Assembly: GCF_052425735.1 (NCBI RefSeq)
Contig: NC_135760.1
Location: forward strand, 124,001-188,000
Origin: Oculina patagonica
Lineage: Eukaryota
Direction: 5' to 3'
Length of the DNA stretch: 64,000 nt
The notes below the pieces were generated by a model that was not told where the DNA came from, made no database searches, and saw only the letters and a list, made by a program, of their open reading frames with translations. Position numbers and translations under genes: made by a program. Within the stretch, counting starts at the first letter, position 1, and every line of letters starts with the position of its first letter. This document shows, one piece after another, positions 20,101 to 64,000 of the stretch.

Positions 20101-23100
20101 ACTGATCTCAACATAGAAGAGCTGCAGGCACATGGAGAGGTATGACCGTAGAACTTAGGAGGGTGGGGTCAGTAAGGAGTAAGAAATATGTTGCTTAAAA
20201 TTGTGATTGCCTTTTGTTCTAGAATCTTGAGTTTGACGTTCGAGAGAGAGAACCACACTATAACATGCTTCTGACAAAAGGAGACAATTTGATGCAGACC
20301 GGACACCCAGCACCGGGCCCGATTGAGGTGAGATTAGTTAATGCTACTTTAAAGCAATGGGGCCAACATTGAAAAATACCATTGTTAGAAGAAAACAGTC
20401 CTTCCCCAGTAGATCGTGGAGAAATTTAAGTTGAGCCGGAGAATGCTTGACCTGAGCAAAGCCCTCAGCCGCGCTGTCCAAGAAGGGAGGCTTTATTAAT
20501 TTAATGTTGATTTCTTTTTAACTCCACTTAGGCGTACCTGAATGCCATGCGAAGTCAGTGGTGGTGGTTAAACCAGCTTCTTATCGCCTTCCAGAAGCAC
20601 GTTAGGAACGCAGAAATGTACCAACAGGTTCGAATAGTAGTGTACTGCTTCCACACCTTAAAGCTTTCCATCAAATTTTTGATATCACGATGACACCTTT
20701 TTATTGGTTTTTCATGGCATTGCTTGGCCAATCAAGAACCAACATAGTCAAAGAAGAGAAAGCGTCAAAAGTAGACACGTGACGATAAATGTTGGCGCTG
20801 ATTGGATGAAAAGTTTGGAAAACCAACAAAAAGATGTCAAAGAAAGTTCTCACAAATTTATCACGCAACGGTAGTCCTCATGACTGTAACACAGGCTTTT
20901 GCTACTGTCCACTTCTAACACTGCGAAAGGTTTATTAGTAATATGTAGATTCTCTATTTGATTATTTTTGTGGATATTTTGAAATTTATAAAGGGCAAGC
21001 AAAGTATGTTGTAATGAATATATTTTTTTAATACGTTATCAGTTAAATTTCCTTTCAATGTACCTATAGGTTTTTAGTAAAAAGAAAAATGGTTATTCCA
21101 AAAGTTCATTTCGACTTAAATCTCCTGTTTATAAGGAATGTTTTTCTCGAATAACGTCAGGTTTTCAACATTTCGTATACCCTGTGTTCCACGAAACGTT
21201 TTTTTATGCTTATTACTTGAATCTCCATTTTAACTTTTCAAAGACAAAATGTATTTTTTTATTGTAATATACAGTATTTCCAAGACGCGCATACCACAGA
21301 GCAAAAGATGATTCAGTTGGTTGAACGACTGAACAGTGAATATGATGTACAGAACATCTCCACACGTGATACCGCTGAACAGGCCTTGAACAGGCTCACG
21401 GTAAGTGATTTGCAACTTGAAAACTGAATTGCTTAGCACTATGAATGTCAAAATAAGCCCTATGCAGGCTTAAGTCTTTGTAACTGCTTTATACGTGAAC
21501 TTGTTTCTACTCATTTGAAATCGCCTTTGATTTACTACTACCTTGCCTATCCGTATCTTCCTCCCACGCGCGCCCATTGAAAATAAAGTTCTGTTAAAAA
21601 AAACTCCTGGACGCCTCTTGGTGTGGTTATTGGACAGTTACAGATAAATCAATTCTTTGTGCACTTCCATACGTTACTTATTTCCCGAAACTGAACGCCA
21701 TGCGGTGAGAACTGTGTTCCGAGAGTAGTAACGTCCCATGATACGTTTCGAATTTAGCAGTCTTTTTCTTTTGCTACATTCAGCGTTTCTTTTCTTTCAA
21801 AGGGTCACTCCTTTTGGGTTGTTAACAAAGTATATCGTATCTGGACCGATTCAACTTAAACAAAATCGTCACAAACGTAAAATTACTGACACAAAATGTT
21901 TTGAATAAAATTCGAAGCAATCAGTCATTTCCCGTAAAGCTATATTTACGGATGTGAGCCGTTGTAGAGAATTTTTGTAAGCTCTCCTCTTGATATCGAA
22001 TATAACGTTTTTGTATTTTTCTTGGATTAAGGAACAGTCAAGGATCACAAAGAGGTGGTACCTGTATTATATTCCCGATATTTTTATTTTTTTATTATTT
22101 ATCAAAAATCAAGTCACTTTTTGACGTTGTTAATTTCAGAGGGTGGTTGCTTTGGGAGGAGGGGGTGTTACCACCGCAGGCGAGTCTAGAAAGCGTGGGA
22201 ACAGTTATAACTAAGTGAGCACCAACTGAAACACGTATCGTCTTGCACAAAAAATATCACAGTATTCAGGAGCTGACCTGCAATGAACTAGTTTAGTAAC
22301 AAATGGTATCCAAGGGTGAGTTGAAATACTCCAAGTCCTTATGTTCAAACCCACTTACTGGGACATCCGTGGCCAGCTGTGACCTGCGGCGATGGAAGAA
22401 ACTGGACATGAGAAAGGCTGATTAAATAAAAGCAGTTTTGGGTCGTTGCTTAGTTTCAGTGACTCTCTTCTTTGTAATTTTGGCGTCAAATGGAAATAAC
22501 TTTTTTTAAATAGTCTGAACATCTTGTCACTGCAATCATATATACTGGAGAAAGATACTGTCATTTGTTTCAAATCTCGTGAAAGTAGCGTAAAAAAGGC
22601 TTGAAACAATGTGTTCAGTGTGGAGGCGCCTGGTAGGCGTGAATTTGCATGAAGCCTGAGGCAAGTTCAATCTAGAACCTACTTTGAAATAATATATGCG
22701 TCCATTAAAAAATAAAACGATATGACCCGGGCACATTGACAGCTGTTTCGAATCTATCGAAGTCTCTAGCTTCGAAATTGAAATTACGCGTGATTAAAAT
22801 ATTAACTCGTGTGAGGTCTCACGTTAGCCAACGCCTTTCGTCTGTTTAAAAAGAAGAAAGAGATGCCTGCTCGCGGCTAATAGACAAACAAAACGTGTAA
22901 GAGAGAAAAGCTTTTGTTTGCGACAGGGTTCACTGACGCTTCACAAATGGTTTGCGAAATGCGAATTGTTCATTATCTGGTTACCACTTGCACTTATTTG
23001 CATAATAAACAAACTCTTGTTCGTCTTTTTACTACAATTTAATTTATAATAAAAGTCTTTTATTAAATGTTCATGAACTGTAGTTCTTTCCCTAGTACAC

Positions 23101-26100
23101 TTGCCGCTCAAGTTAGCTGGTTTTCTTAGAAATCATGGTATAAAAGTGCTGGCTATAAAGAACTCGTTATTTCAAAAACTTGGTGACGTAACATTTGATC
23201 GATTTAATTTCGCGCGACATTTTACAAATTTCTAGTTTATATTGATCTTATTTCGCGGTCATTTCACGCAGTTATTTGGATACCGCTTACAACTTCTGTG
23301 GTTTTATAGACCTGATTAGTGACATGAAAAACAAATTTGTGAGTACTTTTGCATTTTGTAGTTATTAATATTTCAATGTGGTGATTAAAATTCAAAATCT
23401 TTGTCTCTCAATTTTGCGTGTCGGGTTTCTACGTTAGTTTACGCGCGCGTATCGCATTTGCTATCGCTGGTATGTTTACTCGGAACGTCTGAGGGCGAAA
23501 TTGCAACATGGTAAACGGGAACCTTTCTAATGCTGGGAAGTAAGTCCAAAGGCTAACACTGGGGACAATTTTTGCTGAAAATATGAAGCGACTGATTGAT
23601 TTTGGATGCAGGAATCCGTGACTACCTGTGATGTTGCATTCAGTCAGGTCAAATCCACGTGTTGGCAAGCAGACTGGAGAACTTAGCACTCTGCTTCTTC
23701 GAACTTTGATTTTACATGGAAACGGCGGCATCAGAGGTCTAGCCATAACATATGCAAAAAGGCGCTGGACAAATTTTACTGCAATCTAAATAATCTTCGC
23801 GAGAACGCTATCTCGAAAGTTCAAAAATGTGTGTTGTCTTGCATTGGAATCCACTGCCACTTCTGTTGTTCATTTTGTTTACATCGGCTGTTGTCGCTGT
23901 CGTGGCGTTAATGTCACTTTTGTACTTCATTTACCGATCGAGGGACGAAAATAAATTACATGGACACCGACCTCGAGCGGTTTCCATAAGGACAGCGAAC
24001 ACTCCGCGAATATTTTTCTCCACACTGCTGTACCCTATCAGCTGGGTTTCGCAAATGATCAAAAATCCTTGCACCCGTGTTTATTTTGCAATCAGACGTA
24101 CACTCCACAGTGCTGCTACTGTAGTTAGATGGCGAACAACGCAGCACTCGACCTTCGATCACGACCAACTGATTCACAACAGTCGCTGGCAAAAGTTTCT
24201 ACGGGAGAGAGTGCTTCCTGCTTCGGAAGAAGCAGTTCACGCTGGAATTCCACTGGAAAATTTTCCTATTGTAAGACAGTCTCAAATGGGGACAATTATT
24301 GCATATTCTTTGGAGTACATACGCGATGTGTTCGCTCGAAAAGTTGACGAAAGCAGTGTTTCTGCACCGAAAGAGCGTTATGTGTTGCTTCTTCGCGGGC
24401 CGAAGACAGAAAGTGAAACAGAGTTGGAACCAAAGTTTAAAGATGTTGTCACAGACATGCTCCAGTTTAAGCAGGTAATTTTGCTATTCCTGTGTCCCTC
24501 CATAAAGTTTTTGATTGATTATCTCGAGTAGTCAAGAAGTGTGAAAATTTTGGCAAAAGCGGTCCGTCACGGAAATTGTTATTTGTGTCTGTGCCTTGCA
24601 AAATTTGCATGCCATGTTGTGATCGTTAGCACGCTCCGGTTGGCGCGATATTTCGTTACTGATCATTTTCCCGGGATGAATCGATGAATGCGATTTGAAA
24701 ACTCGAGAAATAGATGTGTGGGTCTTCTGATATTAGAACAGAAGTTGTTATATCATTTCTGTGTAGGTCTCTGCTGTTATTATTGAGTCGAATCGTCGAT
24801 TTGTAATTTGTAAACAGCGAAAGCGACATGTTTCGCGTGAGTAATTTTCCCATGGTGTTAATTTCATGCGGTGAGGTTCTTTTCGGACACGCGCGCTGCT
24901 CGTTCCAAAGACAGCAAGCGGTTCTATTTAATAAATCACCAAGTATGTGTAAATATTTGTTGAAGATTCACTTTCGAAGAACGTTTTATTGTCTTGTGAA
25001 TTTTTTCCACTCTGGTATTAAATTTAATTATGGTTCTCGAATTGTCTCTCTCTCGCTTTAATATCAAAAAGTCTTGCTTATCGTTTTCAGTTTGGAAATA
25101 GTTTTTTTTCTGTTTCTTTTCGTTTTATTGACTGGTGCACAAGATGGTGTTATTTCAGGGAAAAATAGAATATTCTTGTTCATGTTTTGACTTGCATATT
25201 TTAAAAAAAGTTTTATATTTATGCAAATGTTTTTAAGATCACAGAACATTGCAAAAGGATTTATTAATCGTTTTGGGTTAAAAGTGTATATATTTTATGA
25301 ATTGTACCCTTTTGATTTCAATATACACAATGCGCAAGTTTGCAATAGTCTAAAAAAGTAATTTTGAAATCTTTTTTAAAGAAGGAAATATGTGTTAAAC
25401 TCAGTCCCTTACATTTTTAAAGCCCAATGTAGAATAATTAATACCAATGTGTCCTATTCTTGTATTAGGGTGAAAACCCTATCAGCGACCCTAGCTTAAG
25501 TTGGCTTTGCAACTTGATCAGTACATGTTACAATCTCTAATGAGAAAGTTATACCGCTTAGGTTTCTGAATTCACTCTCAGCCATATTGATAGGGAGATT
25601 TGGTGAATTGGATAATTAGTTAGGTTCTACAGCTACTATCTTCTCCTAAAGCATTTTTATTTGGTATGAATTATAAGATGAAAAAAATTGCTGTTTTTAA
25701 TCAGGAAAGTGTGGTGTTTGACAAATTAACATCATAATGGTAGTCGGTAATATCACATTCACAAAAGATGATCCTGATGACCTTTAAAGAAAGTTATGCC
25801 TGATGGTAGAGGGTGTTATAAATGTCTTTAATTTGCATTGTGATCGCTATAAATCGGTTTATTTCTTTTGATGTAGAAATGGTCACAGTGTTAATAACTG
25901 TTAAAACAATATTATTGTTGGTGTCCCTTGCAGACGGGTTACATGCCATAATCACTTGTGTCTTATGCATTCTTGTTTTGTGGTGCTCCTTATGGTCTGC
26001 TTCCATTCTTTAATTTCCTGTTACTTTATTACTAATGATCCAATAGTCGGTATAGAACCCATAAGATCCATTTACATAGCTTAAAAAAACAAAAGGGCAC

Positions 26101-29100
26101 AAATGATAATGTGTGGTTCCAGAAAATATCCATACCCTCCCCTTGGAGGGTCATTGGAAATTCCAAGGGGAGGGGAGGTCATAGACATAAAATGTTAAAA
26201 GAATGTATGAAGTTTAACTGGAACTTCCAGAGGGGAGAAGGGGTTGAAACCAAAAATGGTCTGTGGGGTGAGTGAATGCATTTTCTGGAACAAAACAATG
26301 AGTTCAACGGGTTCAGCTTGCATGGATCATTCAAGTGTTCCTCATTGCCAATTTATCAGAAATAAGCAGATTATTCTAACATTACAAAATTGTTTGTGAA
26401 ATAACATATTCAATAAGGATGAAGATGAAGATATTACAAAGCAAGATTTGTTTTTCTTTGTGCCCAGTTTTTTTCTTACTGAACCTGACATACTGCCACT
26501 TAAACTTCCTGTCATATTTTCTACAGATTTCTCTCTTGCACTCTCTCTTGCACTCTCTCTGAACAGATCACTTTTAATAATTAAAAGCTAATTTATTTAA
26601 CAATTGTTGTTCATCACTAACACCTCTTAAAGCACGAGTCAAATCCTGATATACTGATCTCTTGGGCACTGTTTTCAGACGTGTGCTGCAGACTGCAATG
26701 GTGAATCCAGACCTTCGGATGGGGGGGGGGATCATCCAGACCCCAGACGCTAGAAAAAAAGGGGGATGCTCTCAAAAATATATTTTCTCAACGCCCTTCG
26801 GGCCTCTGTTTGTTCCAAAAATACGGTGGCGCCAGGGCACCCTGGGCTTCTCACCTAGATCTGCCTCTGGACTGTGTTTTCAATGCAGTTTTGGGTCATG
26901 ACACTGTGTCAGTTGGATACTGCCTCTGTGTAAACAATGCCTTGATTACTTGACAATATACAGTAGAAGCCCGGTAACTCAAACTCTGAAGGGAAACAAA
27001 AAACAGTTCGAGTTAGCGGGGTTTCGAGTTATCGCGGTCGATTGAATATTTAATTTGCAAAGTTAATAATTGATAGTTTACTGATATTTCAGCACTTCAG
27101 TATACAGTACAGTGCAAATTAAACTTATGTCGTCAGAAACTCTTAACACGATCATAAATTCTTATGATAAGAGTGGAAAAGGCTGTCAAATACGTGATCT
27201 GTTCGTTGCTCTAATCAATGGGCATCCGTGGTGAGTTGCAAGAACTGGAATTCAAGTTATCGGGGTAAATTTTACCCAAATTTTGATCAAGGGAAACAAA
27301 ATTAAGTTTGAGTTAGTGGGGTTTTCGAGTTATCCGAGTTTGAGTAAACCGAGTAAAAATGACTGAAAAGTGGAGTCAAATCCAAGGGAAATGGAAGTTA
27401 GTTCGAGTTAGCAGGGTTGTTCGAGTTATTCGAGTTTGAGTTACCGAGGTTCTACTGTATTGATATCGTTAGGAGAAAGTTGGTGTTGGGGATCCTCAGG
27501 AATTAACATTATTACAATTTATTTTTATACCAGGAAATGAAACAAGAACTAGTGGACTTTAAAGATGTCATAAGCTCTTTACAACTTCTGAGTAAGAAGG
27601 TGGTACCCTTGCCGCAAAGAAAATCTAAACTGAAAAGCAAACTTCTCGTTGAACCAGTGTGCAGTTACAAGAACATGCAGGTGAGTCTGGTATGCACTTA
27701 TTGACCTCATGGGAGAACTGAGCATGGAAAAATAACAGAGAATTATTTAGCTGATAGCTTTTCAGTTATGGTGCACAGACTGATTATAGCCAGGTCTGTG
27801 CGTCATGAATGAAAGCTGAATACTTTCCCATCCAGCTCTGCCTTTAAAGTCTGCAAGTCTTTTATCACACTTCTTTGTGTTAACTTGATTTTTTGAAAAG
27901 TTGTAAAAACATTTTGGTGATTGTTGAATTTACATGTGCAGTGAATGAATATCTCAGGTATGTGGGGCTGGACTTGCGTTGAAAATGTAAACACACGGCA
28001 CTTGGTTTGATATGCATTAATTGTTTTTTCAGAATATTGTCAACAAAGGTGAAGAGTGTCTTCTGTTGGATAACTCTGAACATCATTCTTGGAAAGTATG
28101 TATTTTTATTAATTACATGTATATTTTTTTTTAAACATTATTTCAAATAATCATCGAAAAGATATTACTGTAAGTATTTCAACTTAAGATACCGGTAAGC
28201 TCACATCACATTAAGGTTAAGACAGACAGACAGATGGTCATTCAGGCAGGTAGTCAGTCAGTCAGACACTGAAACACGGCCCTTTAGGGGTTTGATTTGC
28301 AGGGTCGTTCAGATGTTTTGTTCTTCTCAAAGTTTTCTTAATGTTATGGACCTCACTGAATTGCTTTACTTAAACTTATTACACTCCTTAAACTGTGATT
28401 AAATGATTTAATGACTTGACGCCTGTCTCCCCAGATCACAAATGCCAGCAGTAGACAGTGTGAAGTGCCATCAGTGTGTTTTGTTATTCCTGCTCCAGAT
28501 GTAGAGGCAACAGAATTTTCAACAAGGTAATGCTTTTAAAATGTGATTTTTATTGATGCTGTAAAAGTACTGTACAATTCAAATTACTGTACTAGTGTAA
28601 GAATTAAGTAATATATTTGATATTATAAGAACCATGATTTGTTCACAGTAAGTTGTTGCTGATGGTAGCAAATCAAACCTCTTGATGTTTATGTGTAAAG
28701 ACATTTTGATGACTTACTTTGGCTGAAAAAAAAATTAAAGTGAATCAAGAGGGATTAATTAATTTTGTTTCTGTAATATGATCTGCAACTGTTCATTTAT
28801 TTTTTTCAAAATAAATGAGTTTAAGATTGTCCATCACAAGGTATGTTTTACTGTGCTACACCAGTAATTTTTCCACATGTTTGTCTACCCAGGCTAGAAA
28901 TACAGTACAAACATTTATTAACACTTTGGAGAACAAGACATTGGAATCTCAAGCAAGCCCTCAGCAAAGAACAAGTCTTCACAAATGTGAAGGTGATCAA
29001 ATCCACATCTCCTGAAAAGGTACATCAACACAACTTACATACTTGTAGGAGGGTATCTTTGGTATGGGTGGAATGGGGTAGAGGGATCAGGCATGTAATG

Positions 29101-38100: not shown

Positions 38101-41100
38101 TGGGGCTTGTAAATATTTTGTTGCCTTTCGTTGTAGCATTTTGTTGACGACGTTAAAGATCACGAACGAGATCTGAAGGAGGTGAATCAGAGTGGAGAAG
38201 ACTTCCTACACGAAGCAAAGGTGACTGTTATTCATTTTCCTTTTTAACACAGTACCATTTGGAAATGATATCCTCGCTTACAGACCCATGCATATCCTAG
38301 CGGCCGGTCAGCTTTGCGTCAAATTAACTTGGAAACGCAAACATTTCAATTTATGCGTTTCTGACATTTCTTGATTGTGTTTATTCTGAAGCTTAAAATG
38401 ATACTATTAGGTTATAACCTTGAAACTAACAGCACTATAAAACCTAACAAGGATATTTACTGTCCAATGTACTATTATATACACGAGTTCAGGTCTTGTT
38501 ATGTGACTTCGCTATCCTGTCTTACTGAGAAATGTAGATACGATCATTGAAATCTTGAGAAATTGGCAATTTAACCGGAAATGGAACAACTTTTTGCAAA
38601 CATCATACTAACGCTTTCATTTCTGAGTTCAAAATAGTTAATTCTCCTGGTCAAAGGATTTGTGCTACATCAAGACCGTTTCCATCAGTTGACAATTGTC
38701 TTTATTCTCCGCACATGTCCTTTTGAACGTGTATCTATATTGTAACGAGAAATTAGATGTTGAACACTCTTTGAATATTACCAAGTGTCCAGAGGAAGCT
38801 TAATTGGGTGAAACTTGTTTTGCTTGAAGGTTTTCCACGCAGAACTCGAGCGCTCTGTCGCCACGTTAGAATCCGCTGATGTCAAATCGCCGACTCAAGT
38901 TATTCCAGATCCGAATGAGAAGTCCTGGGTACTAGAGAACAAGCTTGCCGATATCAACGAGCGATATAGCAGGTAAAAGGTGTTTAGTAATGTGTTTTTA
39001 ATTTGAAGGATACCTTTATCCGACCGACATAGCAAATGTCACGTATCGGCAGTCTTGTGTTACATATCTCGTCACGCATCCCTCATTATATTACATCTCC
39101 TACCCTATTGGCCTCCATCACAGATGTGTTTGTAAGCCCTCAAGAAAGTCTGCATAGGAGGCAATCATTCTATTGGCGTTTCATCCCCGGGCTCACATCT
39201 CACGCTTGTAACATCTGATGTCCTGCATCTAACTTGAGTTACGTTTCCTGACACACACCGTACGTGACATCTCCTGTCACGCACTCTTACATCCCTGGCA
39301 CGCATTCTACTAACGTTACATTTTTGTTGTGTTCCATCTCCAGGCGCGTATGGGGCGNNNNNNNNNNNNNNNNNNNNNNNNNNNNNNNNNNNNNNNNNNN
39401 NNNNNNNNNNNNNNNNNNNNNNNNNNNNNNNNNNNNNNNNNNNNNNNNNNNNNNNNNNNNNNNNNNNNNNNNNNNNNNNNNNNNNNNNNNNNNNNNNNNN
39501 NNNNNNNNNNNNNNNNNNNNNNNNNNNNNNNNNNNNNNNNNNNNNNNNNNNNNNNNNNNNNNNNNNNNNNNNNNNNNNNNNNNNNNNNNNNNNNNNNNNN
39601 NNNNNNNNNNNNNNNNNNNNNNNNNNNNNNNNNNNNNNNNNNNNNNNNNNNNNNNNNNNNNNNNNNNNNNNNNNNNNNNNNNNNNNNNNNNNNNNNNNNN
39701 NNNNNNNNNNNNNNNNNNNNNNNNNNNNNNNNNNNNNNNNNNNNNNNNNNNNNNNNNNNNNNNNNNNNNNNNNNNNNNNNNNNNNNNNNNNNNNNNNNNN
39801 NNNNNNNNNNNNNNNNNNNNNNNNNNNNNNNNNNNNNNNNNNNNNNNNNNNNNNNNNATACTTACGAATTTTAGTCATCGTTATTCAACGGATTTCTATT
39901 TCGAGCGTTTTTACACACTTGTTGTAACTGAGAGCGTTTGTTAATTTCTCGCAGGCTACTGTTGCTACTCAGTGAACAAGGAACTATCTTGGACCGCTCG
40001 TGGCGGCAGTTACGCGAATACGACAGTCAAGCATCACAAGTGTTACCTTGGTTAAACAACGCAGAGGACACACTAGCAAGATACATGGCGCAGCCTATAA
40101 AACCAGATCCCACAGCCATTAAACATCAAATCGGCGACCTAAAGGTAATCATAAATGAAAGGAAAACAGCTTTACAATGTTTTAACATCTGATCGATAAC
40201 ATGTTGCAACATGTTCGTAAAAAGTTTTGACAGGCCTAAGTAAAGCAAATTTTAGGCTTCTTGTTTAGTAGAGATTGTAGCGACGGTTAGGAGGGATTAA
40301 ACGTTTTTATACGTGGTTTGTGAAGCTGGCGTGAAAGGAGGGCCGAGAATATAAAACAAATATTTCAAATGAAAAAATGATAGAGTATCCAATCAGTAGT
40401 TTAGCAGCTCTCGTACGCTTTTCATTTTGCTGATCCTCTAGTGTAGCAGTTGATATTGTTTTTGGGGCTAGGGGCATTGTTCCTATTATTTGTTCCACTG
40501 TTCTCTCGAAGGAGAGAAAATAATTCATGTGAGTCGTTTGAGAGCTGCTACCCGACACAATCTTTATAGACAGGAAGCTAACCAGCTGACGGCTCGTGGC
40601 ACCATAGGGGGCTCGATTCTCGGACTCTGTATTACAAGACCTGTGTCCCAACCACTCGGCCACGTTGTGTCGCAAAGAAAACGAAAAAGGGGTCAGGAAA
40701 CTAGAGGAGAAAACTAACTATAAAGATCTTTTATTTGACTTGAACAGATGACAATATTTACCTAAACTAAAAAACACTGTGCTCTTGTCGACAATCGATG
40801 TTTATCCTTTTATCAGACACTGCAGACAGAAGTGAATTCCCATCAAGCGGAGATCGTAGCTGTTGGCGTGCTCGGTCACAGCATTGAAGGGTTGATTCGC
40901 ACCCCCGAGTTTGAGCGAGGAAAGTCCATAAATGAACGATACGACCAGCTGTGTGCAAACATCACTGTGTATCAGGCCAAGCTGCAGTCCGCTCTCACGA
41001 CGTCACAGAACTTTAAGGATGGACTGGATGCCACTATCAAGGCACTGAACGAGCTCAAGAAACAGCTGGACAAACTACCGCCCGTGTCACGCAATCTCGT

Positions 41101-44100
41101 TGAACTTAGAAACCAGGCGCAACAGTTCAAGGTAACGCGAGAAACCATTTGTTTGTTCTGATTGATAAAAACATCGCTTTCCTTAACTGGATCACACGCT
41201 GGTTGACCCGATTTTTTCTTTTCTATTTTGCTTGTGTGGCAACGTACAAAACTACCTTTTAAACTAAGAATTATAGTATGCCATAGTAAGACTTGTAGTA
41301 GGGGTACAAGTAGTATTGGGTAGGTACGTAAATGTAGGCGATAACGAGCTCTTAGGGACGGACCAGTATTTTTTGGAGGGGTGGGGGGGGGGGGGGTCAA
41401 ATTTTTTTCAAGACAAACAATTTTTTTTCGGTGTTGTTGTCTGTGCAAACAATTTTTCTGGCTGCATCTTCCTGCAGACAATGTTTTTTGATGTCTGTAA
41501 ACAATTTATTTGGGCTTTTTTGCTTTTGCAAACAATTTTTTCAGGATTTTTGATCCCCCCTCCAAAAAAATGGCCCGTACCTAAATTCAAGTTGTAATGG
41601 GAGACTTAAAAAAGAAGCCAACCTTAATCAAGTTTTATGTTGGTTGTTTTCGGAATCAGCTGAGATTTCTTTTCTTGTCAGGCTCTTCAAGTCGAAGTAA
41701 ACCGTCATGGCACCTCTGTGGAAGCTCTGAACGAGATGTTCCACTTGCAAAAGAAGAAACAAAAAGAGTCCAAACTAAAACAGATGAACAAGCTGTGGGT
41801 TGAAGTGATGGAAAGATCCGACAAGCGAAAAGAAGAGCTCAAGAGCGTGTTCATTATGATCGCAAAAGATTTTGAACGCTGGGAACTGGGAATGATTAAG
41901 CGACTTGACTCTGGTGAACTGGTGACTAGTGACATACTTGTGTTTGAAGAGAAGTTACAGGTGAGTGGCATTCTCGAGCTCAAAATATAAATTCTCCTTT
42001 CTGGTCCTATACATTTCATTATATGTTATTCGTGAGAATTTTTTGGTACTTGAAGGTTAACAAGCATTCCTAATTGTTGAAGGACTTGTAAAAGCTTTGG
42101 GAACACTCTTAAATGGCTTGCTCTCCCGTTTCACAGAATCTTTCTTTCTCCCAAACACCAACTTACGGCTTTGTCGTGACATCACCTTGTTTCTCTGTAT
42201 CGAAGTTATTTGCTAATCGGCCGAGATCGTTTTTTCCGAAAACTCGTCTGTCCGATTTGTTTACCGTCGTTTATTGAATGCCATGCAACGCAATGCGTCA
42301 TTTACCTCACTACAAATTACTTACTACAAAATCCCTTTGCTGTTTTTCATTTGTTAGCATTTCCAAGATGAAGTAGAAAAGATGCGACCAGCCTTTCAGT
42401 CTGTGAATCAAGGAGGGCACGAGCTGATAAATCTGGAGAAGAACAAACAACAGTCCATCATCTTAGAAACGTTAGACCGTGTCAATAAGGACTGGCAAAC
42501 TTTGGCCATTAAACTGCTCAACACCACAGCTAAGTTTGACGAGTTACAGGAGCAATCAGAGAAGTTTTACACAGTCTACAAAAGCGTCACTGTCTGGTTA
42601 GACAACATGGAAGTGAGGCTTGTTTCCATGCCCCCAGTGGGTCTCGACCCTGATGTGCTCAGCTCGCAGATGAAAGAACAGAAGGTAAAAGAATGAGCCA
42701 TTTCAAAATTCGTCAGTTAAAAAAATGTGAAGGGCAAGCCAGTGAATTTAGAACTGACTCTCTTCTTTTCAAATTGACACCGAGTTTCCAATATTGGGGG
42801 CTTGTTATCCCTTCACCGTAGATCCATTACAGTATTTTCAACCGTTGTAAATTAATTCACCCCTCCAGAATGTTGGAGTAGGTTGAATTTTTTTCAATCT
42901 CGTTTCCAGGGCTTTTCCCTTGGTAATTTGGGAACGAGGTTATCATGAACCAATGTGAGTGATGATTAGTCGATTAGCTCACGACAGTTACTCAGACATC
43001 CTAGCGCCCAATTATTGTGCTCAGTCTCCTTTCAGTTTTAGGAGGGGCGAATTGACGTGTCTTTTTTATCGCAAGTGACAGATTCTTGGTTCTAACTATG
43101 TTGGTTCGACTTTTTTGTTAGGCGTTACAGAATGAAGCCGTACAGTACAAGGCTCAAATTGATCTCCTTGTTGGCCTTGGAAAGGTCATCATTAGCATCA
43201 CAGCCCTACAGCCCAGCGAAACGCCCCAGTCCCCTCTCGAGGAGGACTTGACATCAGTGCGCACGCGGTACGATGAAGTATGGAAGGGCCTGGAAACACG
43301 TAACGTGACATTAGAGATCACAGTGTTACACATGGAGAAATACAGGAGACTGGTGAGGAATATAACAATTTTCCTGGGACGGACGGAGAAGAGGCTGGAA
43401 AAGTTGGAACCCGTTGGTGGAGACACGGACACAATCAGGCGGCAAATATCTGAACACAAGGTAAGAACCAATGGTTCCTGTCACGCAACGCGTCCGAACG
43501 TAACATTATGTGACGGCCCGGGTAACCCCTGGTATGTTTGAACGCAAAAAAGAAAGTGTTACTTTTTGTCACGCAGCAATTCTTGAGGAAACATTGCTTG
43601 GCGACTCAAGTAACGTTTGCAAGTGTTTGAACGCGAAATGAAAGCGCCGAAGCTACTCAGGACTCGTTAAGTTAACATTTGCGAATTGAAAACGGTGCTA
43701 GATTTTCGTTTGTTTTTCTTACAACATAAATCACATCTGGTAATAATTACCTCTTGTCTGAACGTAATTTGGTGCAACTCTTTTGTTGCTAAACAGAAAT
43801 GAAATAAAAAACATGGTTGCATTTAATTCGTTGTATAGTAATCTGAACATGGTTGTATATGATGCTAACAGAATTACTTGTGACCTCTTTACTCAGACCC
43901 TTCAAAAAGAAATCACTCAGAACCAGGGCGATGTTGCGCTGCTCTTGAAGGCGGGAAATGATTTGTTAGAAGGCCGTGAAGGAGCTGCCGGGAGTGACGA
44001 AATCCAGGTCAGTAAATCCTTCCATCCTATTCTTAACCTTGCAGAATTCATATTGCAAGGAACCAAGACAGAAGTAGCTGCTACCCGACCCAACAAAGAG

Positions 44101-47100
44101 TGATGTAATAGTTTATTGTATTATGGCTTTTGTTTCAAATCATTGTAAAACAGATCAAGTTCCCGTTTAAGAAGAATCGTCCAAAATATATATCACCTTA
44201 CAGGCTGATTTAGAGTTTACTCGTGCGACTAAGGTCATGTTAATACGCGTGTGCCTTTGTTACTGACGCGACAGTCGGATCGTAAGCTTGTTGCTTGTGA
44301 CAGTGGTAAAAGGTCGTACCGTCTAAATTGACTCTGCAACAAATTATTTTGCAAGTGTTATTTGATAAAATTAACACCACTTATCGTTTATGGAAAAAAT
44401 TCTATCATGGCAATTTGGTGGAATAAAAGGAAGGAAATTTTTGTCCCACGATGCTAATACACGTCTAAGCTTTTAAAGGGCCTTATTTTGTTTTACCTCT
44501 ACTGCTGCATCTCTGTTTAGGAGGAGATTGCTAACGTGCGAGGCCGTATGGAGTTTATCGTGGTCGCGTCAAACGAGCGACAGAAGGAACTGGAGAGTAC
44601 TTGGAGTACAGTTAAAAATCTGGATGAGCCAGTCCAGTCCCTCACGGTTCAGATCAAACAACGGCTTGGAGAGATCGAGTCGCTTTTGACAGAAGAAGAT
44701 CCCAAGAAACTAAGCAGGCGGGTCAAGGTAACTTACGTACATTTTATATTTTTCTTACCTATTATTCAGTCTAAATCCAAAAATATGAGCAACTGTAACA
44801 AGAGATCGCAGCTGGAATTAAACCCCATTGCAAGTTATTGTTGTGATAAACTAAGCCAGGCTGCATTTATTAACAGAACTGTTGATCGCGGGCTCTTAGT
44901 CTTCACATCTCATCTGTTACTGTAGAAATACAGCCAAATTTTCTGTGAGCTGTTTTTATAAAGGAAATATAGTGACAAAGGTCCTCAAATTTCTCTTTTA
45001 AAAGGCTTTAGATCACGAGGTGGCCAGCCTCAACTATCAGCTTGTGAATACGAATGAGACAGGGCAAGAAGTGGTACGCCATCTACAGGATACAGAGCAA
45101 GACCCAAGCATTGTTATAGACAAAGTGGACGGAATCAACAATCAGTGGGAACAGCTTCAAACTAAACTACTGGAGCTCAGAAATCGCGTTGAAGTCACGG
45201 TGAGTTCAGAAAGATCCTTCTTCACATATCTCGCTTTACGTTTCACGCTTCCCGCCTCACGTTTCACGTTTCATGCTTCACGCTACACGCTTCACGTTTT
45301 ATGCTTCACGTTTCACACTGCACGCGTTGTCCCTTCACTATTCACACTACCCGCTTTGCACCTTCACATTGTGTACCCATTAAAGCAGTTCTGAGGGTTA
45401 GTAATGTAGCTAGCCTTCTTGCCAAGTCCTATGTGGGTGACGTGACTGTCACTCTGGTCATGTCACGCTGTTTGTGGAGCATGGTGACGGTGAGACTCAG
45501 GTTGAGGTAAATACACTGTTTTGTATCGTTTATTTAAATGTTACATAATATCGGCGCTTAGCCACAGTTTGCTGTTTCATTTGGTGCTCAATGAATTGGT
45601 TTTTTGGTTCCACTTTCCTGTGTAAACTCTAAGGAAGCAAATGATAAACCATCTTCTGAAACATCTCTTCCAGTGTAAAATGCAGACTGCAGACTTATCC
45701 TAACCCTGACTAAACTAACCAAAACCTTATCTTAACCCTATTAATTAATCCTAACCCTAATGCTAGCATATGTCTTAAACTAACCGTTAAAGTAACCGTT
45801 AAGGTAATAGCTAATTTCAGTCTTCAGTCTGCATTTCACAACAATAACCGTTTTTGCATGTAAGACAGCTTATTATTCATTTGTGACTGAAGAGGGTACA
45901 AAAACTGGCGCTCGTTTTGTTGTAAAGATTCTCGTTAAAATATCAAAGAGTTTCTTTAACTTGCTATCTAATCAGCAAGCGGTACCAGTGCTCCGAAAGT
46001 TATCTTTTTTGGTTATCGCCATCAGGACACGTCATGGTTTTTACATGATCATTTAGCCATGTCGCAAAACGTTGGTCATAAGATCTGTGTCACAATATAT
46101 TTAGCGGTATTCTGTCTGTGATGTGCAAATTAAATTAATCAGATGCACTGCTGCAGGCAAAGTCTTTGTTTTACCCGTCAGTAACACTGAATCAAAGGAG
46201 GCCGCTGCTTACAGGCCAATTTTTTCGTAGCGATATCTCTTTAAGTAATTGTTAAGAATGCGGAAACCACAAGACACCAATAAATTCAGTTTTCGAGAAA
46301 ATACTGCTAGATACGTTCGTACTACTACATCAGTCAGGTTTAACTTGATGTGACGTGTAAACCTTGGTAACTCGACTTTTAGTCTTGCTGTATTTGTTTT
46401 GCAATTTATTATTTTGAGGCTCTTTACTTTTAATCTTAATGCTGCTTGATATTACTGCCCGTTGCGTTGAACGATCCTGAAATCATTTGCGATCATTTCC
46501 ATCTTGCCAGACCTGTTGGTAAATAAACAGGCTATATTGCAACAGTTCAATTCTTGGTGAACAATTGAGAAAGTTCTCGATATGCTGATTAGTTGCTGTC
46601 TTTAGCGTGAATGATGATTTGATGGCAGCGTCGTGGCACATAATCCAATTGGATCCGAAATGAAAGCTGTTTATCGAGTTTTTGGACTCTTTAGGAAGCG
46701 TGAGAAAGATGTGAGTTGTTTTCTTTAGTTATCCTTTATAGTAACAGAACGTTAAAGGGACAGCTGAAATATTTATCCCAAATGTTTCTCTTGATCCTCC
46801 TCCAGTCGAAAGCATTATCGTTTCTGTTCGGTTCAGTGTTACCTACATGACGTTTTTTCAGCTAAGTAAACTTTATTTTGAGGTTTAGTTCGATTTCGAC
46901 ACAATGCAACAATGTCTTTTTCAAACGTGACATAGCTAACTTGCGTGGAATTATTCTTTTAAACGCACGAGTTGCTTTCTGAGGTTGTTAATGCAAATTA
47001 TGTTAAAACCGACTGAAACTAGACTTTTGATGAACCGTAAAGCTCTCCCTGATGATAGCTAAACGGATCTGAAAATGTTGAACGAGACACTTATTCTTTC

Positions 47101-50100
47101 GCAACGTGCTACAAATGTCCTCTTGTTCACGACCATTGCTGCATGAAGGCGCTGACTTCCATCTGATCGCTAGCATTCGCGAGATAATTCGAGTAAATTG
47201 AAAACCGGACGTAAAATTGAGTATTTATCGACACGTGGCCCTCAATTTGATTCGTAACGGAGATTTGGCCCGTATACTGTCAGTCAAATAGCAAAATCAA
47301 ATCAGTTCTGATATAACCAGCGATCATACAGAAACAGACCGCATCTTTCAAATGAAAATGTTTTATATGTTAATTTATTCACCAATCTTTTAAACAAAAT
47401 TCGGAATTAATTCTCTGAGCTGAATATTTGTTTCGAAATTTGAACGGAAAACATGACAATCTCAAATAGCGATGGTGGTTTTATCTATCGTTTTCTTATT
47501 GTTTTTTGAAGGTTGTTTTCCCACTGGTGATTTCATTGCAAATATTCTTAATTCTCGGATGATATCCGCCCCGTCAGTATTGCGTGAGAAAAATTCTCGC
47601 GTGACATAAAGAGCAGTCGGACTCAGAAATTCAGTTTCCTTAATATCAGAGAAGGTTACTCAAGAAAGGGCGTATTTGAAATGTTTTGGGTGCCATTTGT
47701 TTAACTTTAAGCGATTGTTTATTTCGGCAACAAACACGTTATTACTTGGAACAATTTTTTGTTAGGAACTTACGAGAAGGTTGGCGTGGAGATCTGTGTG
47801 ATTTAAAAAAAAAATCTCTTGTTCTTGAAATTGTTCGTAGAATGTTATTCTAACAAATTACAGGCCTTGTAGGGGAATTATCGTCATTGATTTTCGATAT
47901 CGTTAATGATGACTCCTTAGTCCCTTGCTCAAATGCGTTTTCTAAGAATGTTGTACGTTTTCTTTGACAATTGCCCTTTTTAAAAAAAGGATTGCATTAC
48001 AATATAATCTAACGTGGGGCCGCGTTGAATGTCACTGTCATGCAAATTTTAAAAGTTAGCCGCGAAAATAAAAATAAAACTGGATGGCTAATTATTTAAC
48101 GTTGGTAACTTGCATTGTGATTGTCGCAGGGTTTGTTCTCTTCTTTATAATTTAAAAAAGTCATCTATATGTAAATTTATTTGAACAGCTTTGTTGTAGA
48201 CAAAACAAATAGTCTATATCTTCTCCCAACCAACCGATCAACCGAGCAAGAATGTAGAAACATTAAGTATGGACAAGGCGCTATGTAATATGTCAAGTGC
48301 GTAGCTAGGCGAGGACAGTTAAGAGTTTTTCTTAAGTTTAATGACATGCGTGGTATTTCCTTGTATCTTTAGGATGACGAGCCTCAGGCGGACAGTGATT
48401 CTACCGTTCCTTTTAAGGTCACAACGGTTAAAAAGAGTCAGCTCGAAGGATTTGAGGTTCCCAAAGCCGTTAAAACGGAGCCAAAAGTCCCAGAAGCTCC
48501 TGAAAAGTCAAGACTATCTGGTAGACCTTTCGAATTAGGAAAGCCTGTTTCAAGAACCTCAGATAGTGACGAGACAGTAGGGGACAAGTCTCCATTCGGA
48601 GTTACTACCGTTAAAAAGGGCACTATAGAAAGTTTTAACATTCCAGTTCCCTTCAAATCCGAACCAGAGACTAAACAAGAGGAGAAACCTGTTGCAGCAA
48701 GCAAGCCAGACAAAGATGCAAAAGAATTCGAGTGGGGAAAACCACTTCTTGGGGCATCATCTGATGAAGAAGATTATGAAGAAGAAGAAGACGACAGTGG
48801 GAGACAACCTCTTGTGTTTGAATCAGCAGCATCTGTTTATTTGGAGAAGGAACCAAGTGAGGTGAGTATTCCTTTGCAGCGTTCAGTAAGGAAGATAGTG
48901 AATCCTGAAGAAGAAGTAATCGAGGAATACGTTGATGAAGAAGGTCGTCGGGTAAAGAGGATTTCTAAGGTAACAACCACCAAGACAATAACAAGATTAG
49001 AGCGCCAAATACCTGCGCAGGAGATGGATGTCGATGTCCCTTCAGAGCCAAGAGAACACGTGGAGGAGTATACAGACGAACACGGTCAGCGAGTGAGAAG
49101 AGTAGTACGGACGTCGTTTACCACTTCTACCAAGACGGTGCTGCGAGATGGAGCAGTGAAGGTTGTCTTGCAACCTGGAGAACTTGGTGAACGTGAGCTT
49201 AGCGAAGGACCTGAGGATATAGAAAGAATCGAGACGTTTACCGCCGACGACGGCCGTCGTACACAAAAGCTCACCAAAGCCACATTTACAACTCATTTAA
49301 AAAGAAACGTACAACCTGTTACAGTCGAGTTGCCGTCATCAACGTCATTGCCTGCACAAAAGGATGACGAGCCGTCCATGAGCCAAAATGACGACGAAAA
49401 TATAAATCTTGCAAGAGTAGAAAGAACCGTTTCTTATCCAGAGTGGTTGGTAGCTGTCAAAGAGAAACCATCAGCGCCAAAAGAGATTTCTCTTGCATCA
49501 GTCCAGGTAGAGCCACATCGGCCTGTGTTGCCAACAGTAGATGCCACCGAAAGACCGTTTGTCATCGAGGAACTGTCAGCAACTGTTGTTGAAAGGCACC
49601 GACCTGTAATATCACTCCAGGATCTTGAAGATGAGGAAGAAAGCCCAGCAATACGCGAGCGCAAACGAATAGAACCTCCCGAGGGTCTGCCTGAGACACC
49701 TGAGATACCCAGAAAAAGGGCACACAAGGGGCCTTCACCTACACCTAACAAGGAGCCAGATTCAGAAACGCAAATAGAGATGGAAGACGACCGAGAAGAA
49801 GATGAACAATCAGAAGACGATGAAGGCGACGAGTTTGATGAAGAAATTGTAGTGTTGGAGATAAAAAGGCGCCCACGGGTTCCCAAATGGTTTGTTGCCG
49901 TGCCAGACGAGCCTGAAGAACCTGTCAATTTTGAAGGTTTGAATTATCCACAGAGAACTACCAAACCAGAGCTAACAGACGACGTAATGGAGAGTGTTAC
50001 TGCGACAACTTTGAATCGGGAAATAGTTATTCCTGAAATCGATGGAATGGAAGATGAGTCACCAGAAGAAGTTGAGGAGTATGTTGACGAGAACGGCGTT

Positions 50101-53100
50101 CGAGTGAGGCGAATTGTGAGGCGAACCATCACAACAACAGCTATCAAGAGAGAAGGTCAACAGATTGAACCAGTCGAGGTTACGTTTCCTGTAGCACCAT
50201 CAGAAGATGAGTCACCAGAGGAAGTGGAAGAGTATATTGATGAATATGGTGTTAGAGTGAGAAGAATTGTGAGGCGTACCATTACAACAACTACTATTAA
50301 GAGAGAAGGCCAGAAGATTGAACCAGTGGAAGTTAAATTTCCTGTAGCACCATCAGAAGATGAGTCACCTGAAGAAGTGGAAGAGTATATTGATGAGCAT
50401 GGTGTTCGAGTAAGGAGAATAGTGAGACGAACCATCACAACAAGAAGTGTTATTCGTACATCTGTTGATGAAGCAGAGGACGATCCACGTACAGAGGTGT
50501 TTGAGTCAGCGGCACCTGTTTACCTTGACTCTGAAGATGTTGTACCTTCAGTGCAAACTCGTGAAGTTGTCCTCCCTGAGTGGATGGAAGAGAGTGAACC
50601 AACATCAGAAGAACCTAGAGAGCCTACAGGTGAGATTTCCTTCTTAATTCGGCCATCTCGACCAACCAAACCAGAGCCAAAAGACGACGTCATGGAGAGT
50701 GTTACTGCAACAACTTTGAATCGGGAAATAGTTATTCCTGAAATCGATGGAATGGAAGATGAGTCACCAGAAGAAGTTGAGGAGTATGTTGACGAGAACG
50801 GCGTTCGAGTGAGGCGAATTGTGAGGCGAACAATCACAACAACAGCTATCAAGAGAGAAGGCCAACAGATTGAGCCAGTCGAGGTTACGTTTCCTGTAGC
50901 ACCATCAGAAGATGAATCGCCAGAAGAAGTAGAAGAGTATGTTGACGAGAACGGTGTTCGAGTGAGGCGAATAGTGAGGCGAACAATCACAACAACAACT
51001 ATCAAGAGAGAAGGTCAACAGATTGAGCCAGTCGAGGTTACGTTTCCTGTAGCACCACCAGAAGATGAATCGCCAGAGGAAGTGGAAGAGTATATTGATG
51101 AGAATGGTGTTAGAGTGAGGAGAATTGTGAGGCGAACAATAACAACAACTACTATTAAGAGAGAAGGCCAGAAGATTGAACCAGTGGAAGTTAAATTTCC
51201 TGTAGCACCATCAGAAGATGAGTCACCTGAAGAAGTGGAAGAGTATATTGATGAGCATGGTGTTCGAGTAAGGAGAATAGTGAGACGAACCATCACAACA
51301 AGAAGTGTTATTCGTACATCTGTTGATGAAGCAGAGGACGATCCACGTACAAAGGTGTTTGAGTCAGCGGCACCTGTTTACCTTGACTCTGAAGATGTTG
51401 TACCTTCAGTGCAAACTCGTGAAGTTGTCCTTCCTGAGTGGATGGAAGAGAGTGAACCAACATCAGAAGAACCTAGAGAGCCTACAGGTGAGATTTCCTT
51501 CTTAATTCGGCCATCTCGACCAACCAAACCTGAGCCAAAAGACGACGTCATGGAGAGTGTCACTGCAACAACTTTGAATCGGGAAATAGTTATTCCTGAA
51601 ATCAATGGAATGGAAGATGAGTCACCAGCAGAAGTTGAAGTGTATGTTGACGAGAATGGTGTTCGAGTGAGGCGAATTGTGAGGCGAACAATCACAACAA
51701 CAGCTATCGAGAGAAAAGGTCAACGGATTGAGCCTGTCGAAGTTCCGTTCCCTGTTGCACCATCAGAAGATGAATCGCCAGAAGAAGTGGAAGAGTATAT
51801 TGATGAAAATGGTGTTAGAGTGAGAAGAATTGTGAGGCGAACAATTACAACAACTACTATTAAGAAAGAAGGCCAGAAGATTGAACCAGTGGAAGTTAAA
51901 TTTCCTGTAGCACTATCAGAAGATGAGTCACCTGAAGAAGTGGAAGAGTATATTGATGAGCATGGTGTTCGAGTGAGGAGAATTGTGAGACGAACCATTA
52001 CAACAAGAAGTGTTATTCGTACATCTGATGATGAAGCGAAGGACGAACCATATAGAAAGGTGTTTGAGTCAGCAGCACCTGTTTACCTTGGCTCTGAAGA
52101 TGTTGTACCTTCAGTGCAAACTCGTGAAGTTGTCCTTCCTGAGTGGATGGAAGAGAGTGAACCAACATCAGGCGAACCTGGAAAACCTCCAGGGGAGATA
52201 TCCTTCTTAATTCTGCCATCTCGACCAACCAAACCTGAGCCAAAAGACCTCGATCACGACGACGTAATGGAGAGTGTCACTGCAACAACTTTGAATCGGG
52301 AAATAGTTATTCCTGAAATCGATGGAATGGAAGATGAGTCACCAGAAGAAGTTGAGGAGTATGTTGATGAGAACGGTGTTCGAGTGAGGAGAATTGTGAG
52401 GCGAACAATCACAACAACAACTATCAAGAGAGAAGGTCAACAGATTGAGCCTGTCGAGGTTACGTTTCCTGTAGCACCATCAGACGATGAATCGCCAGAG
52501 GAAGTGGAAGAGTATGTTGATGAGAATGGCGTTCGTGTGAGGCGATTGTGAGGCGAACAATTACAACAACAACTATCAAGAGAGAAGGCCAGAAGATTGA
52601 AACAGCCGAGGTTCAATTTCCTGTAGCCACGCCAGAAGATGAGTCACAGAGGAAGTAGAGGAAATATTGACGAAAATGGTGTTCGGGTGAGGAGAATTGT
52701 GAGGCGAACCATTACAACAGAATGTATCGTACTTCTGTTATGAGGAAGGACGACCAAGGAAAGTGTTGAGTCAGCGGCACCTGACTGACTCTGAAGATGT
52801 TGTACCTCATCCGTGAAGTCCTCCCTGAAGGAGGAAGAGAGTGAACAACACAGGGTACCTCCAGGGGACTCCACAGCCACTGACCACTGAGAAAAGACGA
52901 AAGGAGAGTGACTGCAAAAGAGGAGAAGAGAAAGAAAATGAGAGAAGTGGGGAAGGCGAAAAAAAAAGAGAGAAAGAGATGAAACGTAGCCAGGCGCAGA
53001 GGAAGGGAGAGAGTTGAGAGAACGGGGGGAGGGAGAGGCAACAAAATATCAGAGAGAAGGGGAGCCAGAAGAAAAGACTAAAGAAGGAGACACAAAGATT

Positions 53101-63027: not shown

Positions 63028-63839
63028 ACAAATCTTAGAACAAAGGCTTAATCTCAGAAGATCGTAGCAACAAGGCTACTCTACAACTTACAATACCCCG
63101 TTCTTTATTTAAGTCGTCTGCAAAGGATTTATCTCCGGAAACATTAAATTTGCTATCGGTAGTGCCTTGGAGGTTCTTGTCCCCCTTGGCACCTTGGGAC
63201 GCAAAGGCCGAGGCCTTCTATTTTGTTCGCCTAAAGTTCTCCGGAGGTAATTATCGTTGCTTTCTAGCACGGATGATTAAGGCGCATAAATCCAACAGAT
63301 GTAGCTTCGCACCATCTTTTCAGCCAAGTGCAAACATGTTGATTCGGTTCCTCCGTAGAGATAGCACAACACTCATCAGTAGGGTAAAACTAACCTGTCT
63401 CCGACGCAAACCAGCTCACGTTCCTATGGTGGGTGAACAATCCACAGCCGCCGAGAAGGAAGAGCGAGAAGGAAAAAAGCAACGTCGCTATGACGCTGGC
63501 TGCCACAAGCCAGATCCCTGTGGTTCGACACCTCTAGCTAAAACCCTAAAGACAAAGGAGAGGCCACGCTTTCACGGTTGTATTCGTACTGAAAATCAAA
63601 ATCAATGATCCCTGCGAGTTCGCTGAGCTCACTTAGGACACTGCGTATATTTGACAGATGTGCCGCCCCAGCCAAACTCCCAATGACGGGGGATCGCCAC
63701 CCGGAGGGGGGAGAGAAGTGAGCGGCGCCCGCTCCACCAATAAGTAAAAAAAGAAAGAGTAGTGGTACGGCGGGGCCCCCCGCGCGAGGCACAGGCCCCC
63801 CGCTGAACAAAGTCGTTCCCTTGCTGCGGTTTCGCTAGA
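63028..63839 (-). rRNA. 28S rRNA: 28S rRNA, 3' part of the upstream repeat unit (heavily degraded)
   Basis: Conserved blocks TCGTCTGCAAAGGATT, CTCATCAGTAGGGTAAAACTAACCTGTCTC, GCCGCCCCAGCCAAACTCCC and GGTTTCGCTAG, with many deletions. Confidence 0.9.
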
Positions 63840-64000
63840 CCCATTTCACTATTGTTTGCACATTACATCCATCCATCACAGCCAGCTGATGCCACGTCAC
63901 TTGTCACGTGTTCACTCCACCATTACGCACTTGTTTACTAATCTTTTATAATCTTCTTAAGGTCACATTTTATTTTAGATTTTTAAGTTGACATAATTCG

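Follow-up and report, generated by a model that had tools for sequence, protein, structure and literature searches.

The 64,000-nucleotide stretch of the Oculina patagonica genome analysed here (the window; contig NC_135760.1 of assembly GCF_052425735.1, positions 124,001 to 188,000 of the forward strand) covers the CH, SH3 and spectrin part, but not the 3' GAS2 end, of a gene that, judged by its sequence, is a plakin/spectraplakin gene of the MACF1/dystonin/shot type. Within the spectrin-repeat region of this gene lies a giant exon that encodes about 25 copies of a short and strongly conserved motif, and it is this exon that I describe here; all positions are those of the window.

The identity of the host gene is indicated by CH exons, a plakin-type SH3 and spectrin repeats. 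The fragments at 576-836 and 9335-9577 have their best PDB matches (E 0.013 and 1.7e-4) in plectin and MACF1, on the actin-binding CH domains; the lowest values for MACF1 and plectin are E 1.7e-4 and 4e-4. Spectrin_3 at 21221-21424 (E 0.002) stays under its Pfam threshold and the plakin-type SH3_10 at 27507-27701 (E 0.001) under its gathering score, in both cases because a fragment of one exon is too short. Some eighteen exons with helical, spectrin-like sequence extend up to 45.2 kb, with weak Pfam Spectrin matches on 42358-42693 and 45002-45391. Beyond the array, the final 100 codons of the giant exon align just upstream of a Pfam Spectrin repeat in the Nematostella protein A7SF37 (E 5e-18), and the orthologous locus of an ENA assembly (L002) has spectrin open frames downstream of its array. 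Furthermore, the Acropora digitifera relative XP_015773284, a member of the P0071 cluster, bears the NCBI label 'dystonin-like', and the scanned window exons of this CH-plakin-spectrin gene contain no ANK, ZU5 or Death match. An earlier reading made from the letters alone (the sequence-only reading) had placed the exon inside the spectrin rod of a spectraplakin, and the spectrin matches on both sides of it, with CH and SH3 upstream, support that placement.

The giant exon is a genuine expressed exon of this coral gene. The RNA evidence consists of assembled contigs from four public runs (X1, X2, X3 and X10, under three organism labels) aligned to 47800-53700. In contigs of all four runs, CTGGAGCTCAGAAATCGCGTTGAAGTCAC directly precedes window position 48372. 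The same sequence is located at 45170-45198, at the end of the upstream spectrin-like exon, where it is followed by G|GTGAGT, and the in-frame junction of the two exons reads ...EVT|DDEP. The aligned part of the upstream intron (47800-48193) has zero RNA depth in three of the four runs. This junction, present in 4/4 runs, and the absence of intron depth in 3/4 demonstrate that the giant exon is spliced into mRNA, and the junction rules out the possibility, entertained in the sequence-only reading, that it is not part of the spectraplakin message. Single contigs of X1 and X2 span the exon head (48372-50034), and X1 contains 100% of the words sampled from it. The borders proposed from sequence alone, 48373-55590, are exact, with an AG acceptor (TTTAG|GATGAC at 48373) and a GT donor (ATCAAG|GTATTC after 55590). 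RNA joints at 48795-49782 and 51017-51790 and loose ends at 51833 were considered as splicing, but I take them instead for collapsed repeats or cross-mapped acidic low-complexity stretches in the assembled contigs; the joint at 51017-51790 lies inside the repeats, has AC..TG ends and is not a multiple of three in length.

The proposal of a single giant exon therefore stands as regards borders and splicing, with the correction that the frame, as assembled, is not continuous. From 48373 the plus-strand frame is open over 48373-52548 (1392 codons) and again over 53293-55644 (784 codons), and between these stretches, across 52549-53292, it is disrupted by multiple frameshifts. All four RNA runs insert single bases at 52544, 52646, 52663, 52719 and 52722, and also at 52739 and further sites; over 52486-52783 run X1 differs from the window by 15 gaps and 0 substitutions, and two motif copies become intact again once the first five RNA-supported insertions are applied. 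Because the RNA contigs supply the missing single bases and restore the frame, the break is an unpolished patch of the assembly and not decay. An intron at 52549-53292 is likewise ruled out, as the RNA contigs enter the region with inserted bases and do not skip it. The orthologous locus L002 matches the window collinearly over 44.5-56.4 kb, and its frame runs through 2366 codons without interruption.

The array itself is built from a unit of 51 residues (at the nucleotide level, Tandem Repeats Finder detects seven blocks of a 153-nt unit, at 82-89% identity), and the units are arranged in seven super-repeats of about 235 residues, each comprising three to four units and a conserved linker of about 90 residues (Table 1). 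The strict pattern E[EV]Y[VIT]DExGxR[VT][RK]R[IVL] has 23 matches in the exon frame and 0 in the other two plus-strand frames; one copy in the broken patch and one diverged third copy in the exon head bring the number to about 25, the count given by the sequence-only reading, in which the motif is written SPEEVEEY[VI]DE[NH]... Copies were aligned in three sets, namely the window copies (A1), 58 diverse copies (A2) and 81 copies with the spacer (A3). Over 81 diverse copies the consensus is ExVEEYVDExGRRVRRIVKRTxTT, in which G16 is invariant and E10, D13, R21 and P41 are conserved in >90%.

Table 1. Positions of the giant exon, its parts and the exon spliced to it, in window coordinates.
Feature	Position	Strand	Description
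Upstream spectrin-repeat exon	45002..45199	+	3' end spliced to giant exon; weak Pfam Spectrin match, E 0.003
Giant exon	48373..55590	+	7218 nt as assembled, 2406 codons, phase 0 at both ends
Exon head	48373..50019	+	Acidic, non-repetitive, with short conserved blocks; from translation, alignment A1 and RNA contigs
Diverged motif copies of exon head (n=3)	48898-49023, 49039-49164, 49213-49338	+	
Super-repeat array	50020..55290	+	Starts 50020, 50725, 51583, 52300, 53329, 54034, 54754; anchor EIVIPEI
Assembly-error patch in array	52540..53315	+	Frameshifts; no aligned RNA contig at 52922-53315
Exon tail	55291..55590	+	Onset of next spectrin-type repeat; from BLASTP to Nematostella A7SF37

Pfam has no real family match for the repeat, in the giant exon or in the Nematostella relative, and no Plectin-repeat match at E <= 1 on either open stretch of the exon. 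Pfam matches on the exon to Hormone_3, PTCB-BRCT, OsmC and others were rejected as summed-repeat scores with no significant single stretch, and PF27288 ('Alr2735'), precomputed on relatives, is flagged as faint and is spurious. Matches in a protein atlas (scores <= 0.68, to synemin, Xin, AHNAK and the protein 4.1 C-terminal domain) are leads only; hmmscan of the exon did not find 4_1_CTD. In the searchable literature I did not find the motif printed or described in any publication. The repeat module is new to Pfam and to that literature; the gene family itself is known, and unannotated orthologous models exist.

The units are under strong selection. Among the 13 full units compared in the window, the 22-codon core has a proportion of synonymous differences (pS) of 0.32 versus a proportion of non-synonymous differences (pN) of 0.019, and the ratio of non-synonymous to synonymous change (dN/dS) is 0.047 there, compared with 0.03 for the acidic lead and 0.23 for the spacer. 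Because synonymous divergence has reached 32% and non-synonymous divergence 1.9%, the copies must be old and kept by selection, not recently homogenised. Generic low-complexity sequence, which the sequence-only reading had itself raised as an objection, is excluded by this core ratio. Including its linker, the 235-residue super-repeat has 84% mean column identity across copies and several genomes (alignment A4), and units 1, 2 and 3 each carry their own position-specific signature across genomes. Since these signatures are shared, the three-unit super-repeat is older than the divergence of these species. The linkers of about 90 residues also contain conserved short motifs.

Among 1.84 billion representative proteins, a profile of the unit detected 40 at E <= 0.001, 16 of these below 1e-30, including Nematostella A7SF37, an uncharacterized protein of Montipora foliosa, the P0071 cluster with its Acropora digitifera protein, and a hit on a Tara metagenome scaffold that has a spectrin-like frame further upstream. 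Nematostella, with 25 copies, and many coral assemblies have the array in the same location; its frames are intact in many genomes, and there are between 23 and 33 copies per open frame in different genomes. Like the coral protein, the Nematostella one (A7SF37 / XP_001629770, P0008) continues after its 25 copies with the same spectrin-type helix and then a Pfam spectrin repeat, and it shares with the coral models (XP_015773284 and that of Montipora foliosa) the consensus VEE[YF][VT]D[DE]xGRxVRRIV[KR]RT. It departs from the coral in the greater divergence of its copies, in copy number and in the layout of the super-repeats. These Nematostella, Acropora and Montipora relatives are unannotated or automatically named gene models. 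Two contigs hold several such frames: P0058, P0059 and P0060 are three long motif-bearing frames (23, 33 and 25 copies) on one contig of 433,754 nt, and P0063, P0064 and P0005 likewise lie together on one of 493,657 nt. The array may be about three times larger on these contigs, or the locus may be duplicated.

The motif is also found in shorter proteins. P0030 (L009:157-1734), P0026 and P0037 have roughly 480-525 residues, with two hairpin motifs and an acidic EEIVV.EV.R.PRY block. Proteins of the P0030 type are collinear with the giant exon head (BLASTP E 2e-11), the collinear protein P0030 itself having 525 residues. The contig of P0030 is 2.8 kb long and a stop codon closes the frame on it, so a separate small gene may contain the motif as well. 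P0030 begins with the Cys-rich sequence MKACIRWCCPCCLRGEPEE and P0037 with the very similar MKACLRWCCPCC, and the start of P0026 differs; from its residues, the Cys-rich N-terminus of P0030 and P0037 may be a palmitoylation site.

From the 81-sequence unit alignment, AlphaFold2 predicts a beta-hairpin with strands at residues 7-12 (EVEEYV) and 18-23 (RVRRIV) and a DENG turn, at a mean predicted local distance difference test score (pLDDT) of 68.8 that rises to about 82 over residues 11-20. The 235-residue super-repeat has a pLDDT of 31 throughout, so that no globular super-repeat fold is predicted, and a hairpin is drawn in each of its three units. The exon has an isoelectric point (pI) of about 4.5, is composed of 23-25% D+E, 13-14% K+R (mostly arginine), 8-10% P and 13-14% V, has a net charge of -5 per unit and is predicted to be mostly disordered outside the hairpins. 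The sequence-only reading had described acidic, probably disordered sequence and a beta-hairpin motif, and both descriptions accord with this pI, with the predicted disorder and with the one hairpin that AlphaFold2 predicts per unit.

What might such an exon do? The reading I favour, and to which I would give about an even chance, is that it forms a multivalent docking array of hairpins for a putative partner and an extensible spacer at once. The exon adds about 2400 residues within the spectrin-repeat region of a linker protein. In each unit the acidic strand EVEEYV would fold via the DENG turn onto the basic strand RVRRIV, giving a small charge-paired beta-hairpin, and the hairpins would be spaced by segments rich in proline, glutamate and valine that are predicted to be disordered. 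Such an array could act as a docking platform for a repeated or polymeric partner, and the disordered PEV-rich chain could lengthen the isoform and make the long isoform extensible. A specific recognition element is favoured over a mere spring because both hairpin faces are conserved, because about 25 copies are kept in sea anemone and corals, and because the acidic disordered spacers have a fixed length. Several points weigh against docking. Nearly all core residues are conserved, on the two faces of the hairpin alike, which would be compatible with self-association or with a purely structural role as well; the binding partner is a putative one; the exon may be constitutive or alternative; and the hairpin itself rests on one moderately confident prediction, the score for the super-repeat being low. 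Furthermore, the error patch and the collapse of repeats in the RNA contigs make the copy number of this assembly uncertain.

Spectraplakins are master linkers of actin, microtubules and junctions, and those of bilaterians (MACF1b, shot) carry plakin repeats in a giant internal exon. The coral exon resembles the bilaterian one (of MACF1b, dystonin and shot) in being a very large internal exon that adds repeats to a CH-plakin-spectrin backbone, but the plakin repeat is a globular module of about 38 residues whereas the coral unit is 51 residues of hairpin and spacer. The gain of extra binding regions in long spectraplakin isoforms is known only for bilaterians, in the form of plakin repeats. 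Cnidarian spectraplakins carry a different module in their giant internal exon, one that is absent from domain libraries and strongly selected. For a partner search and for mechanics it offers a 51-residue unit, a super-repeat of 235 residues and, in Nematostella, an orthologue that is accessible to genetics.

Docking is not the only function that can be proposed. The array could be a PEVK-like spring or spacer in which the hairpins serve as sacrificial bonds, unzipped by force, that determine how long and how elastic the isoform is, and have no external partner. The acidic, proline- and valine-rich composition given above, the disorder predicted outside the hairpins, the modelled pairing of acidic and basic strands within each unit and the location in the elastic spectrin rod would all suit a spring, and the exon is, like titin PEVK, a long acidic insert rich in P, V and E with predicted disorder in a giant cytoskeletal protein. 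Unlike titin PEVK, it has a 28-residue motif under strong purifying selection, uses arginine for lysine and is far less extreme in composition. A dN/dS of 0.05 and a motif identity kept between coral and sea anemone are tighter than a compositional spring would lead one to expect, and the short motifs conserved within the 90-residue linkers point the same way. I consider a spring of this kind unlikely.

The sequence-only reading saw in the unit a similarity to the ankyrin obscurin-binding domain (OBD/OTBD). The resemblance can be described: the ankyrin segment (ANK1 ~1813-1832; sAnk1.5) likewise belongs to a linker protein of membrane or cytoskeleton and has an acidic-aromatic-TDExG stretch, after which basic and hydrophobic residues alternate, but there are one to three modules at the ankyrin C-terminus versus about 25 in the spectraplakin rod, and its register is off by one residue. 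Profiles of the copies were searched against all PDB chain sequences (177,635), a set in which human ankyrin-1 is present at full length, from native erythrocyte complexes. With A2 there were four matches, the third of which is human ankyrin-1 (7tw3_G, residues 1813-1832; 11.2 bits, E 2.1), aligned to positions 9-27 with a one-residue gap; it is the sole match of the four that aligns from the acidic into the basic half of the motif. With A1 there was no match at E <= 10, and ankyrin-1 was absent from the matches of A3. The ANK1 string given in the sequence-only reading is correct, since it matches residues 1813-1832 of 7tw3_G, but the similarity claimed is not significant: chance gives such a score about twice per PDB search, and the match is unstable across profiles, appearing with one of three. 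No ankyrin occurs at E <= 0.001 among the 1.84 billion representative proteins, and in a word-indexed protein search restricted to the EEYIDEHG unit the matches listed at E <= 10 were cnidarian relatives, with no ankyrin among them; the assignment of EEYIDEHG to ankyrin-B, made in the sequence-only reading, is a putative one. The resemblance to ankyrin is best treated as a lead, one that would be compatible with a distant common origin or with convergence on a charged hairpin, homology being unproven.

If the units were true OTBD homologues, electrostatic contacts of their basic strands might anchor the spectraplakin to scaffolds that are obscurin/titin-like, filamin or plectin-like. The rank of ankyrin-1 with A2, on the very site that the sequence-only reading had named, speaks for this, and in the literature the OTBD is described as built from duplicated short modules, with the ankyrin-G OTBD reported to bind plectin and filamin C. 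The E value of 2.1, the gapped alignment, the loss of the match with A1 and A3 and the lack of any ankyrin at E <= 0.001 speak against it, as does the description in the literature of one module as vertebrate-specific, and true OTBD homology appears distinctly unlikely. The two- to four-motif proteins P0018, P0021 and P0025 were tried as ankyrin C-termini and rejected, their contigs having no ANK, ZU5 or Death neighbours and one of them a spectrin-like upstream frame; by their sequences they look like other cnidarian spectraplakin exons. A bolder version, to which I attach little credence, takes the hairpin unit for the pre-bilaterian ancestor of the module later gained by vertebrate ankyrins as the OTBD, an old eumetazoan docking motif that would connect linkers of membrane and cytoskeleton with giant scaffolds of muscle or cortex and would be present 25-fold in the spectraplakin and twice in P0030-type proteins. 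Were the ankyrin resemblance true, the origin of the OTBD, described as a vertebrate gain, would shift to before the cnidarian-bilaterian split.

A third suggestion is that the array binds a filament lattice (microtubules, actin or intermediate filaments) and is the cnidarian functional counterpart of the bilaterian plakin-repeat giant exon. About 25 regularly spaced basic strands match the pattern of a lattice binder, and the bilaterian plakin repeats also sit in a giant internal exon. According to a published survey, plakin (plectin) repeats arose in early Bilateria, and cnidarian spectraplakins have none (PMC9145010). However, in the Pfam and PDB searches the unit resembles neither plakin repeats nor any known filament-binding repeat in sequence or fold, its net charge of -5 would be unfavourable toward acidic filaments, and the giant exon lies roughly a dozen spectrin-like exons past the plakin SH3, not directly behind the plakin domain. 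I find lattice binding quite improbable. Finally, a non-functional origin, as a decaying repeat, a satellite, a transposon-derived frame or an assembly artefact, would account for the frameshifts at 52549-53292 and for the ribosomal DNA join 1.2 kb downstream but is hardly credible given spliced RNA in four runs, contigs that read through 52486-52783 with the missing bases restored, strong purifying selection and intact orthologous frames in many genomes.

That join deserves a description of its own. From 56793, about 1.2 kb past the giant exon, the window contains ribosomal DNA on the minus strand, in the order large subunit (LSU) 5' part truncated at model position 664, 5.8S, small subunit (SSU), tandem-repeat spacer and LSU 3' end (63028-64000), with a run of N at 59311-59453 inside the SSU. 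Synteny with L002 stops at 56392, and L002 has spectrin exons where the window switches to ribosomal DNA. The join from 56393 onward is probably a chimeric assembly join, which is consistent with the unpolished patch nearby. Elsewhere in the gene, a 500-base run of N lies at 39358-39857 between spectrin-like exons, and an open frame at 23794-24528 encodes a hydrophobic, transmembrane-like stretch. Near 4000-4700 and 5900-6750, frames on opposite strands encode nearly the same peptides, the largest pair being 3848-4255 (+) and 6460-6744 (-), with further pairs at 4156-4539 (+) and 6122-6433 (-) and at 3622-3840 (-) and 6752-6970 (+); these near-identical peptides point to an inverted duplication or a transposon pair in the region of the first intron.

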